Shown here one piece after another: positions 2,076 through 7,000 of a stretch of DNA of 64,000 bases. The first letter of the stretch is position 1; every line of letters starts with the position of its first letter. The stretch is from Chlorokybus atmophyticus. Its lineage: Eukaryota > Plantae > Mesostigma and Chlorokybus algae. The notes under the pieces are model-generated. The model made no database searches, had not been told where the DNA came from, and saw only the letters and a list, made by a program, of their open reading frames with translations. The position numbers and the translations under genes are program-made. The DNA is taken from positions 124,001-188,000 of the forward strand of contig RHPI01002656.1 of assembly GCA_009103225.1 (NCBI GenBank), written 5' to 3'.

Positions 2076-2242
2076 GGGGGACGGGGGGGGGCATGGATAG
2101 CATAGCACAACATGTCACGGGCTTGGGCCAGCCCGACAGCTTGTTCATAACATAGCATTGTGCACACTACATGCTGATATGGTGCATGCAGATTGAAGAG
2201 CCGCTGCTCAATGTGCCCTGTGGCTGTACCTGCAACCTACGC

Positions 2243-3847
2243 CTAGCTGGGGCTTGCAGTCATTCTAGCCAAACCTGTGCAGCAGGATGTAACTCTGCCA
2301 GCACCTCTCAACAACGAATGATAGTACGCTGCAACCGAGCCTGCATCATCTGCAAGTGCGTCCTCCGCAATGCCATCGTGCCCATGAGTAGCACCGGAGC
2401 TGTGCCTGTAAGTCAATCCGGCACTGACAGTGCGCGCTGTGCAGATGCCCACATGAGTGGCTTTGTCAGGTGTCCCAAAGAATACCTGCAAAGGACAATG
2501 TTGTGCTCATTGGACTACACCAACCATCGTCACACTGTGAAACTATAGACAGTAAGAATGGTATGATATTACCCGCCTTTAGATAAAGAGTGCAACTACT
2601 AGGACTCATGTCGTGTGAGGCTGCTCACCAGATCTCCTGGACGAATGTGCGCAAGGTCTACTGGCGTTGTGAACGCCTCCTGCAGAGCAAGCAGTGTCAT
2701 AAAATGACTGCAACAATAATAAGAATTTATTGTTAGATATATTGGTGCACCACCTGCTGGTAGGCGTCCCTTGGAATCCAGATGCCAGCGGACTCAAATG
2801 CACGCTGCACTGCGATGGTCGCACAAGTCAATCATGACTCAGTAAGCAGGTTCTGTGAAGTCCACTAGCTCCCTGGCAAAGGACAGTCAGCACCATTGTT
2901 GATGTACGGCGCTAACGCTATACACATGCACACGCTCAACACACTACCAACAGAGATAGAAACATCAGGTCACGATGCAAAGATGACTCACTCAAGCCGC
3001 TGCAGTCATAGTTGGGTCCAACAACACCGCCCCATAAGTACTCGTTTGGGACACGCTGCGCGCGCTCCGTGAATGCCAGAACCTGTCTTTATCAAACCAG
3101 TTAGAAAATGCCGATGCATTATGCCTGCAGAGTATACCGTGCGCGCATATGCAAGCTCACCAACATTTTGTTCTACCAACAAGCAAGAGAACAAAGACAA
3201 GTACCTTTGGAATGCGTGCTTCAATGGCGGCTTCATCCAACGCGGCTGGCACGTATCGACCTTCAGCAAGGGCGAGCTTTGCACAGTCATCGGCTTTGAT
3301 CCAGCCCGGGTATGCATCTTCGCACAAGACTACGCGACCGGCCCCTTGTGTTATGCTGCAAATTCAAACAACGCACTCTTCAACAGTTGTCTTTATTGCA
3401 CATCATGCAAAGCAATACATATACAGACAGGAAAACTGCAACATTACGATTGCTAGCGTGCAACCGCATGCCTGAACAAGCTGCTGAGCATCACCTGCAA
3501 GACAGTTGGACACGAGTGTATGTGCACATGGATGTGCAAACAGTAAACGCGCATGCATACACGAAGGTTGTGCTTGCCTCAATGCCTGCCTTGATGGGAC
3601 CATCACACATTCAATGTCAATGCAAATTACAGAACCGCGTACTCCACATTCAGCTGATACTCAAACCTACACATACTTAACTCAACCTGCCGCCGTGTGT
3701 ATCATCACCAACCAGCAGGCCCACTCTCGCCTGCAGCCTCCTGCCCTCCCAGGCCTCCGTGGCAAGCGTCTCGCAGGCGGGAGAGTCCCACACCGGCAGC
3801 GACTCCGACGACACCACCACGTACTCCGCCGCCTCCGCCGCCGCCAT
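2243..3847 (-). CDS. NlpC/P60 (C40) cysteine endopeptidase with N-terminal SH3b-like domain, cyanobacterial gamma-D-glutamyl-L-diamino acid endopeptidase type; exons 3847-3687, 3355-3205, 3082-2992, 2809-2754, 2679-2629, 2485-2243 (250 aa)
   Basis: Six phase-compatible GT-AG exons give ...VWDSPACETLATEAWEGRRL...VLCEDAYPGW...VLAFTERAQRVPNEYLWGGVVGPNYDCSGLMQRAFESAGIWIPRDAYQQEAF...PGDLVFFGTPDKATHVG...YRHSSG...GHDGIAED...YYHSLLRGAGRV. Putative Cys (DCSG), His (THVG) and His (RHSSG) triad is intact. Confidence 0.93.
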
Positions 3848-4057
3848 GTGGGCGGAGTTTGTGTGACGCCACCGTAAACCCCGCCAACGTATTCAAAGCA
3901 TTCAAAAAGAGTAAACTCTGCGCAAACAAGGCGAAGGCGGCGGCAAGGTTCGTCTTGGGGTAAGCGACGGCCGGGGCGAGCGGGGAAAGATCCAAAGCAG
4001 AGGCATTGCCTGGCTGCGCAAGCGTGTGCGAGCGCTTGTCTTGGGCTGAACTGCTGG

Positions 4058-7000
4058 ATGAGTGCAGCTCTGGGCTTAGGTAGGTGGTAAGGTCAGAAGC
4101 AGCAGTTAGACCCAGCTGCTTGATTGTTGACTTGGCTAAGAGCGATGCTGCACGTGCTTGTTACCTTGTTGCCTTGACTGCGTGTCAAACTCGTTCAGGT
4201 GACTGGAAACTATGTGTCAACTGCTGCAGCTGTAATGTGTGAACAGAGCAGTAGCAGTATTGGCACGATAGGGCTTGAGGGCGTGCGTTTAACTTTTGAC
4301 ATGGCTCTACTGCAGGCTGGTTTCGTTCTTCCAGTAGCTGAAACTGTCTCTTTCTTTACATAGCGTAAGTGGCCGGGGAGTCAAGCCTCAGGGTGCCTGA
4401 ACATTCATAGCGTGCTGTCATGTACAGCTATATTGTTGCACTGCTTGTCTTGCGCAGCGCTTTGTGTTTATGTGACCTTGTGCAACATGCAGACAAGCGG
4501 TGCAACAAAGTAGCTGTTGCGGGATGGCGAAGACTGCAACAGAAAGCAGAAAACGGGTAAGACAGCCTTGGGTGACTGGACACTAGTTTTGTAAGCAACA
4601 GTGTGTTACAGCCACGGCGTGTACACTTATATTCTCGAATCTACACCAGTTGTGAACGCTGGACCCATGTACATGCAGTGTGATGCTGCCTATGGCTATG
4701 CATGTCGCTTATTTGCTTAGTTCATGCAGGATCTGCTTGCATTCTGGGCTGCTGCTGCTCCGGACAACCTCGCAGCATCACGCGAGCATGTAGTTAACGG
4801 ACGCTCCTCAAGCCAAGAAGAGGAGCAAGGCATGCCTTCCCAACCACGCACAACCGCACAGGCACAGGTAGGAGTTGATGCGCACATGGGACAGCCCCAG
4901 ACCAGAATGTTGTTGATGATGTGTCTTGACTAAGCCAACGTGTAGGACTCCAGACCCTTCCAGGCGAAGCACGTTTCATCACGAGGCAGCCTCGCGGATG
5001 ACCACCAGCTGCCTCCAGTGAGACTGGGCGGTGGGATTTTGGACAAGTTGCGTGCTGCGGAGTCCACCAGGGCAGAAGCTCAAAACAAGAACAAACCACT
5101 AGGTTTTTCTGATGCAGGTCAGTGGTTGCATAACACAGTCTCATGCCTGTTGCTGCAAGTCCTAAATAGGTGTGCGTTGCATGTAGATGAAGAGGAGCAG
5201 CATACACGAAGGAAGGCGTACGTCATGCCGCGCAGCAATGAGCCAGACCGGCGCAAGGTGCATGCACTAGATCTATCTACATGCAGCAAGCAAACACAAA
5301 CATTGACCACCGCTTATGCATTTGCCTCTTTGAACTTCGTGCACAGGAAATTGTTGGTAATCAGCAGACTGGATTGCGACAGCATCCATTTACAGCGCCA
5401 GCGCGTGGCACTCGCGAGGAGAAACCGCAGGACGTGCAGTTCTACACTGCTCGCCAGCAATTAGTACGCACTGCTCCAAGTCCTTTCAAGAACCTTACCA
5501 AAAGTGTTGCTTATGACTGTTGTGTTTGTTCGGCCGTGGCTATGGCAAAGTTGAACATGCTGTACATGTGTTTAACTTTAAGTCATGTTCTTCTGGTAAG
5601 CTGACTTCAGCTGGCCTCAGGCTCTGGAAAGAAAGCGCAAGCTACCAGATATTGATGAGAGTGATGAGCCAGAGCCAGCAACATCCTCCCGGGAACACGT
5701 GAAGCCTGCAGCCGCACCTTTCAGAGCACCCATAAGACAAGAAGGTAGCGCTCAACTCCGATGCTCGTGCGCACCTAGTTGTGGACAGCTCACCATCAGG
5801 AAGTCATACATTTAACAGCCAAGTGGTGATCTCTGTTAGCATTCACCTGTGTGCTGTGTGTTGGTAGCGCGCAATGGCGGTGGACAAGTCAGGGGAGGCT
5901 GCGTTGACGAGGATGGGAAGCCACTTCCTGAAAGGTGAGCACAACTCAACTCAATAACATCAAGCTGCAGAGGTGTTGCGGCGCTGATAGCAGTGTGCTG
6001 ATGCTCAGGTTGCAGCCGCTCCTCCTTCCCAATGGGGAGTTGCCTGATAAACTCAAACACATTGAGACACGCCTTCTGGAAATGGTTATGTCTGAAGTCT
6101 TGACCCAAGGGGAGACCATCACCTGGGACAGCATATGTAAGTTGCGTGGATGGGTGCCACACTGCTGCATCTCGGGGCTGCGTTCTGATGGCCGATTATG
6201 ATTCAGCTGGACTGAAGTACGCGAAGAGCACAGTCCAGCAGGCAATCATCTGGCCGCTGCTCAACCCCAGCATCTTCAAAGGTCCAAGAGCGCCACCAAA
6301 GGGCCTCCTGTTATTCGGGCCACCAGTGAGTCCCATTCACACTTGTCATCTTTTGACATATGCAGTACTTCATTGCAGTACTTCATTACGCACATCCTAT
6401 AATACAACTGGTACGGTCATATCTTGTTTGTAACTGTGCACAATTTGCGCTTGTCACAGGGCACAGGCAAGACTATGATAGGACGTGCTATTGCCAGTCA
6501 AGCAAATGCGACCTTCTTCAACATCTCAGCAAGCTCCTTGACAAGCAAATGGGTGCGTGCAGCTGTGTGTAATGTTACCAGCTAAGCATGTGTTTCACCA
6601 TCCAGTGCTTGCCGGCAGATTGGTGATGGCGAGAAGATGGTGCGAGCTCTCTTCGCACTTGCAAGCTGCATGCAACCAGCTGTCATATTTGTTGACGAGA
6701 TCGACTCCCTCCTTTCACAGGTACTGCAATGTGCATCTAAAACCACCATAGCATATAAAGGGTATGGTACTGTGCCAGAATGCATGGTGTGCGGACAATG
6801 TTAACGACATGCATCACAACATGCCTTCACAACTCATCACATAACAGTCCACCATGTGTGCGCATGATGTAGAGATGTACTGACACGAAGGCAAAGTCAC
6901 CCATGTGCATGTTGGCACTCATGATGTGCAATGCGCAGCGCAAGTCCGAGGGCGAGCATGAGTCAAGCAGACGCCTTAAGACCGAATTCCTAGTGCAGAT

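Follow-up and report, generated by a model that had tools for sequence, protein, structure and literature searches.

Where in the cell does the breakdown of plastid wall fragments run? The question is raised by a gene on the minus strand of a 64,000-nucleotide stretch of Chlorokybus atmophyticus DNA (contig RHPI01002656.1 of assembly GCA_009103225.1, positions 124,001 to 188,000; hereafter the window, whose coordinates are used throughout). The gene runs from 3847 to 2243 and encodes a 250-residue protein of the SH3b-NlpC/P60 type. Studies of chloroplast peptidoglycan have mainly dealt with synthesis (the Mur, PBP, and Ddl genes) and with a single splitting enzyme, DipM; to our knowledge, the turnover of the layer is hardly known. 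A predicted stem-peptide endopeptidase of cyanobacterial descent survives, with no chloroplast address label, in Chlorokybus, Mesostigma, Spirogloea, Pyramimonas, and environmental algae. The gene extends a known enzyme family by a small step rather than revealing a new kind of system. What makes it of interest is that the address label is missing in four lineages, that its distribution is patchy yet deep, and that its splicing is mostly unproductive.

The explanation that best accounts for the whole, and which we hold with moderate confidence, is that a nuclear gene derived from the plastid's cyanobacterial ancestor encodes an AvPCP/NpPCP-type NlpC/P60 cysteine peptidase with one SH3b domain, similar to YkfC and dipeptidyl-peptidase VI (DPP VI), that would recycle free stem peptides outside the stroma and whose output would be limited by splicing.

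The predicted peptidase and its active site

The gene is made up of six exons with a coding sequence of 753 nucleotides, and all five introns have GT-AG borders. This structure, put forward in an original prediction made from the DNA letters alone, yields a product identical to a protein of the published nuclear annotation (P0140; EukProt EP00898_Chlorokybus_atmophyticus_P008086; Joint Genome Institute (JGI) Chlat1 Chrsp78S07707), which is the sole member of its 90% cluster. The gene model is therefore already public, and this copy served as the query for the whole-protein family searches, which followed searches with single exons. Bacterial contamination was considered and ruled out on the grounds of the five introns (four of them seen spliced), the spliced neighboring genes, and the presence of the protein in the nuclear annotation; the splice joints carried by RNA contigs bear out the earlier view of a spliced nuclear gene.

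The whole protein matches the Pfam families NLPC_P60 (PF00877; 68.5 bits, cut-off 23) and SH3_16 (31.9 bits, cut-off 25.8). Both families are matched by single exons as well, SH3_16 by the exon 1 piece among others, and the layout of the protein is one SH3b domain plus a catalytic NlpC/P60 domain. A sequence search of the Protein Data Bank (PDB) gave entries 2hbw from Anabaena (6e-59) and 2evr from Nostoc (5e-57), with the next NlpC/P60 proteins, Bacillus cereus YkfC included, at about 2e-9. NCBIfam holds no specific model for this branch and returned weak matches to other NlpC/P60 families, far under their cut-offs. All sequence motifs on which the original prediction relied are present, as is the intact Cys-His-His triad that it named. 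The latter is formed by C131 (3004-3002), H181 (2455-2453), and H198 (2404-2402), which align to 2hbw and occupy columns that are invariant across 50 relatives.

The subfamily that acts on substrates with a free N-terminal L-Ala is marked by a Tyr in strand beta-D of SH3b, an Asp 18 residues after the catalytic Cys, the S1/S2 residues, and the triad (PMC2954226). In the numbering of BcYkfC, these are Tyr118 and Asp256, which bind the L-Ala amine, and Tyr226, Trp228, Asp237, and Ser239 (PMC2954226). Each of these markers has its counterpart in the alignment of the algal protein. The column of Y69 is conserved to at least 90% among the 50 relatives, and those of D149 (18 residues past C131), Y119, W121, D130, and S132 are all invariant.

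An AlphaFold model built on the 50 relatives has a predicted local distance difference test (pLDDT) score of 90.4 and a predicted template modeling (pTM) score of 0.89. It superimposes on 2evr and 2hbw with template modeling (TM) scores of 0.95 and 0.93, respectively, across both domains (231-240 columns), and SH3b is predicted to pack on the catalytic domain, as closure of the S2 site in this subfamily requires. Cyanobacterial members have a single SH3b and no signal peptide, while those of other bacteria have two SH3b (PMC2954226). The algal protein shows the cyanobacterial architecture, with a single SH3b, no signal peptide, and cyanobacterial nearest kin. Its sequence and its modeled fold place it fully within the cyanobacterial AvPCP/NpPCP group of gamma-D-Glu-L-diamino acid endopeptidases, in line with the Anabaena/Nostoc affinity suggested at the outset. 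The enzyme kind is already known and structurally characterized in cyanobacteria, and the algal gene is a further member. Literature searches found no green-algal paper on this enzyme type or on a role for it in plastid peptidoglycan turnover.

Descent of the gene

Word-index searching across 5.8 billion proteins yielded over 5,400 relatives; of those in the best 120 that bear a name, almost all are cyanobacterial. Scanning bacterial and archaeal genomes, one per species and with an alignment as the query, gave 594 confirmed loci, the best 80 of which comprise 77 cyanobacteria, two entries named 'uncultured bacterium', and one Rhizobium bin. The nearest clusters of the ESM Atlas are all Cyanobacteriota, and the identity to cyanobacterial proteins is 41-52% (median 47%). 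With exon 6 alone as the query, the bacterial genome scan gave no match, and a scan of 1.84 billion cluster representatives gave only 25, several of them eukaryotic.

The eukaryotic matches are Mv14533 of Mesostigma viride, two gene models of Spirogloea muscicola, a transcript product of Pyramimonas obovata (named NlpC/P60 protein in UniProt), and three short products of environmental contigs. The environmental contigs that carry homologues bear introns, and one homologue is flanked by ankyrin and RING genes.

In a careful maximum-likelihood tree of 58 rows, from which the mis-extracted row L017 was excluded, the six eukaryotic rows group together as a single clade (support 99/98). This clade, which is the outcome of the phylogeny called for by the original prediction, sits among the cyanobacterial rows, its exact position there being unresolved. 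Inside the clade, Mesostigma is sister to Chlorokybus (93/75), one environmental contig is the partner of Pyramimonas (95/83), and the shortest branch is that of Chlorokybus. In all eukaryotic homologues, extra residues separate the HVG motif from the HSSG motif, an insertion found in none of the cyanobacterial proteins. Intron positions were compared over the four eukaryotic genes with readable DNA, those of Chlorokybus and of the environmental contigs L081, L084, and L085, and the site and phase of intron 5 are common to all four; intron 1 has the same phase as an intron of L081 and lies in the same variable loop, and introns 2, 3, and 4 are not common to L081.

The shared clade, the insertion, and the position of intron 5 together argue for an ancient, vertically inherited endosymbiotic origin rather than a recent transfer. 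We conclude that the green lineage acquired the gene a single time in the distant past, most simply along with the plastid ancestor, and that most lineages later lost it; this single old entry follows from the similarity ranking, the architecture, and the nesting, not from a rooted test. The original prediction had left the choice between an endosymbiotic and a horizontal cyanobacterial gene open. The endosymbiotic half of that proposal fits better and the horizontal half less well, since the origin is old and common to several green algae. Recent horizontal transfer into Chlorokybus in particular was ruled out by the sister position of Mesostigma, the supported green algal clade, and the shared insertion and intron.

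Two rows that carry non-cyanobacterial names were not accepted as genuine. The 'Methylacidiphilales' row P0038 is a close sister of Calothrix, and the 'Rhizobium' metagenome-assembled genome (MAG) L028 stands amid cyanobacteria; both are read as binning errors. A very divergent bacterial homologue (P0010, MAG GCA_022842565.1; L086:38-2131) overlaps tail-to-tail with a gene of the Mur ligase family. Its very long row was drawn to the eukaryotic clade in a quick tree and lies outside that clade in the careful one. As to the environmental sequences, L081, L082, and L083 represent one eukaryotic contig, rich in GC (65% in L081), that turns up in three JGI metagenomes and probably comes from some green alga. 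The homologue on L081 has introns of its own inside the YLWGG motif (between YLW and GG), and ankyrin and RING-finger genes adjoin it.

Transcripts, location, and proposed role

Transcription was assessed from assembled transcript contigs, from which minor variants drop out. Contigs from three of four runs, belonging to two studies, match the gene without mismatch and carry splice joints, which identifies them as RNA. The splicing of introns 1, 2, 4, and 5 follows the prediction exactly; the joint of intron 1 (3355/3687) is present in an RNA contig, and another contig covers 3687-3829. As far as transcription and these four introns are concerned, expression of the predicted gene is borne out, but intron 3 departs from the prediction by using acceptor 2873, which truncates the protein. 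The sequence that would be lost is well kept: in residues 135-250, beyond the premature stop, 34 of the 36 strongly conserved cyanobacterial positions are retained, both histidines included, which suggests that purifying selection acts there. The conserved coding sequence downstream of the stops suggests that a productive form may still exist, or did so until recently. Such a form needs acceptor 2810, required for the motif DCSGL-MQRAF that is common to all relatives.

The N-terminus bears on the location of the protein. The in-frame TGA at 3895-3893 described in the original prediction is there, and inspection of the sequence between it and the ATG at 3847 finds no AG dinucleotide. The transcript contigs show neither depth nor a loose contig end upstream of 3863. 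In the AlphaFold model, residue 8 already opens the first beta-strand of SH3b. Of residues 1-40, 7 are acidic and 2 basic, unlike in a typical transit peptide. The alignment reveals no transit-peptide extension relative to the bacterial homologues, the Chlorokybus N-terminus lining up with the bacterial start. Mesostigma and Pyramimonas have proteins with the same starting point, and the Spirogloea model adds only about 14 residues, so that the earlier statement on the lack of an N-terminal extension holds for these algae as well. Given the upstream stop, the lack of upstream RNA, the strand at residue 8, the acidic N-terminus, and the short relatives, a canonical transit or signal peptide appears unlikely. 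The missing extension and the acidic N-terminus make a non-stromal site of action probable, and we infer a cytosolic location.

We propose that an amidase would first free stem peptides from the thin layer of peptidoglycan in the chloroplast envelope. Next, the enzyme would cut the bond between gamma-D-Glu and meso-diaminopimelate (mDAP) in L-Ala-gamma-D-Glu-mDAP whose L-Ala amine is free; this would be a step of catabolism or recycling rather than wall lysis. Its substrates would be fragments leaving the envelope, and its probable site would lie beyond the stroma, the cytosol being the simplest choice. The amount of active enzyme would be limited by splicing, the 250-residue form coming from a minor isoform. 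A source of substrate exists, since streptophyte algae encode all ten core enzymes of peptidoglycan synthesis (PMC7455551). The pocket residues limit the subfamily to stem peptides with a free L-Ala amine, that is, to products of a preceding amidase (PMC2954226), which points to a predicted breakdown or recycling enzyme rather than a wall-lysing or antibacterial one.

The context of the cyanobacterial genes also fits a role in wall-peptide processing. In 56 of the best 80 loci, from at least 6 orders, the gene stands head-to-head with a Beta-lactamase2 (PBP-A-like) gene (17 of 17 loci in Oscillatoriales, 27 of 30 in Nostocales, and 0 of 11 in Pseudanabaenales), and in 45 of the best 80 a family 2 glycosyltransferase gene lies downstream on the same strand. 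One may go further and suppose that, in green algae that branch early, a wall-peptide recycling step passed from the cyanobacterial cytoplasm to the cytosol of the host, with shed stem peptides degraded by the host and the dose set by the 2810/2873 acceptor switch in intron 3. We regard this extension as doubtful and put it forward tentatively.

Several points weigh against the explanation favored here. The tree has no true outgroup, and its cyanobacterial backbone is unresolved. Even for the cyanobacterial enzymes, the specificity was deduced from structures and modeling (PDB titles, PMC2954226), and the activity of every eukaryotic member is predicted. The enzyme's ancestors acted in the cytoplasm of cyanobacteria, which is equivalent to the stroma and not to the cytosol. 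Plastid import by a non-canonical route is a real rival to a cytosolic location. The same activity would then be exerted inside the chloroplast (in the stroma or the intermembrane space) by means of a non-canonical or internal signal, at the ancestral recycling site beside the stromal Mur enzymes. The cyanobacterial homologues have no signal peptide and are thus cytoplasmic, the equivalent of stromal (PMC2954226), and both peptidoglycan and its synthesis are plastid-based (PMC7455551). However, an N-terminal extension is missing from all four green algal proteins, the Chlorokybus N-terminus is acidic and lies within a folded SH3b from residue 8, and the in-frame stop and the lack of RNA upstream leave a chloroplast site unlikely.

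The transcripts pose a more direct difficulty. In contigs of both studies, 2992 is joined to 2872, i.e., the acceptor is 2873 and not 2810 (joint 2871/2991, cut +1, CT..AC; depth 66.5 in run X1 and 10.1 in run X2), and the pyrimidine tract ahead of 2873 is better than that ahead of 2810. The 63 nucleotides added in this way contain an in-frame TAG (2867-2865) and an in-frame TGA (2834-2832), so that this RNA stops at codon 137 and encodes 136 residues, ending just past the catalytic cysteine. The productive joint 2992 to 2809 is not seen in the contigs of the two studies, which cannot show minor forms, and the 2873 joint is the sole assembled joint between exons 3 and 4. In addition, intron 1 is retained in about half of the transcript depth of run X1 (an unspliced contig, 3330-3716, with a depth of 25.5 against 24.9 for the spliced joint), with a stop after residue 56. 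The absence of RNA depth across 3864 to 5333 identifies the unspliced contig as intron retention rather than carry-over of DNA. Both forms end early, and the family is patchy among green lineages, as repeated loss would make it. These observations could mean that the gene is decaying or kept mostly off in Chlorokybus, with unproductive main transcripts and little or no active enzyme. Against this stand the intact open frame, the conservation past the stop described above, the short Chlorokybus branch, and the fact that contigs hide minor isoforms, and we consider decay or silencing quite unlikely.

The original prediction also offered the degradation of bacterial peptidoglycan as a function, and the enzyme might accordingly serve against foreign wall material, as an aid in killing or for feeding on wall peptides. 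Trichomonas and mites do possess laterally acquired NlpC/P60 proteins (PMC6299479, PMC4600878), and free bacterial stem peptides would be valid substrates. Intact walls, on the other hand, would not be, since the S2 pocket with Y69 and D149 demands a free L-Ala (PMC2954226), and there is no secretion signal peptide. The Trichomonas enzymes are structurally distant (TM about 0.4), and the gene is ancient and follows the algae in which plastid peptidoglycan is kept. This part of the original prediction is weakened accordingly, with bacterial lysis unlikely, and we judge a foreign-wall role as a whole highly improbable. Recycling of the plastid's own stem peptides outside the stroma is the explanation that we retain.

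Gene features, neighbors, and known systems

The coordinates of the gene are collected in Table 1.

Table 1. Features of the peptidase gene, in window coordinates; X1 and X2 label RNA runs
Feature	Position	Strand	Remarks
in-frame TGA	3893..3895	-	45 nt (nucleotides) upstream of ATG
exon 1	3687..3847	-	ATG 3847-3845; residues 1-53 plus two bases; first half of SH3b
intron 1	3356..3686	-	331 nt, phase 2; spliced in some RNA, retained in about as much
exon 2	3205..3355	-	second half of SH3b; Y69 within motif EDAYPGW
intron 2	3083..3204	-	122 nt, phase 0; RNA contig joint 3080/3203 (cut +2)
exon 3	2992..3082	-	start of NlpC/P60; Y119, W121, D130, C131 (3004-3002), S132
intron 3, observed form	2873..2991	-	119 nt; spliced so in transcript contigs
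alternative segment	2810..2872	-	63 nt; intron in productive model, exon in observed RNA
exon 4, productive model	2754..2809	-	residues 135-153; D149 in motif PRDAYQQ
intron 4	2680..2753	-	74 nt, phase 0; joint 2678/2753 in X1 and X2
exon 5	2629..2679	-	residues 154-170
intron 5	2486..2628	-	143 nt, phase 0, between GDL and VFFG; joint 2483/2627 in X1 and X2
exon 6, coding part	2243..2485	-	residues 171-250; stop TAG 2245-2243; H181, H198; insertion 190-194
3' untranslated region, minimum length	2126..2242	-	RNA contigs extend to 2126 (X2) and 2160 (X1)

Beyond the 3' end of the gene, there is an assembly gap (a run of N) at about 1560-2075, with a C-rich run at its border (2076-2090). On the other side lies a spliced neighbor gene on the plus strand (5468-6500), for which a 1,461-nucleotide RNA contig shows the GT..AG joints 5932/6007, 6136/6207, and 6325/6460; the same contig has a CT..AC joint at 5771/5844. 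A low-depth contig of run X3 at 4980-5258 has several mismatches, a non-canonical joint AA..GC with 29 other letters between, and a loose end at 5258, and it may come from a related copy elsewhere.

Among known proteins, the closest are the cyanobacterial enzymes AvPCP and NpPCP (2HBW and 2EVR). They share with the algal protein the N-terminal SH3b and C-terminal NlpC/P60 domains, a similar length, 45-47% identity, the lack of a signal peptide, the Cys-His-His triad, and all residues of the S1/S2 pocket, and the predicted algal fold matches theirs at TM 0.93-0.95. The algal gene differs in being nuclear, in having five introns, and in its mostly unproductively spliced transcript, and the protein has a 5-residue loop insertion in SH3b and another insertion of 5 residues (190-194) between the two histidines, longer in other green algae.

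YkfC (Bacillus cereus, 3H41; B. subtilis) and DPP VI (B. sphaericus; Bacteroides, 3NPF/3PVQ) belong to the same subfamily, and the bond that they cut in the recycling of murein peptides (PMC2954226) is the one proposed for the algal enzyme. They have, however, two SH3b domains and extra helices, some have signal peptides, and they match the algal protein with only about 40 bits and TM 0.45-0.66.

The NlpC/P60 proteins of Trichomonas vaginalis (6BIM/6BIQ) and astigmatid mites are likewise bacterial-type peptidases encoded by eukaryotic nuclear genes. They come from other bacterial donors, belong to other subfamilies, were gained by recent transfers into single lineages, and reportedly act against bacteria; to the algal protein they are a distant structural match only (TM about 0.4).

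DipM of Cyanophora and Physcomitrium is a plastid peptidoglycan hydrolase of cyanobacterial origin (PMC4015805). Like the Chlorokybus gene, it is a nuclear gene of cyanobacterial origin kept where plastid peptidoglycan is kept. DipM, however, combines LysM with LytM/M23, hydrolyses sacculi, and splits the wall at the division site, whereas the algal protein has an unrelated fold and would be expected to act on free peptides only.

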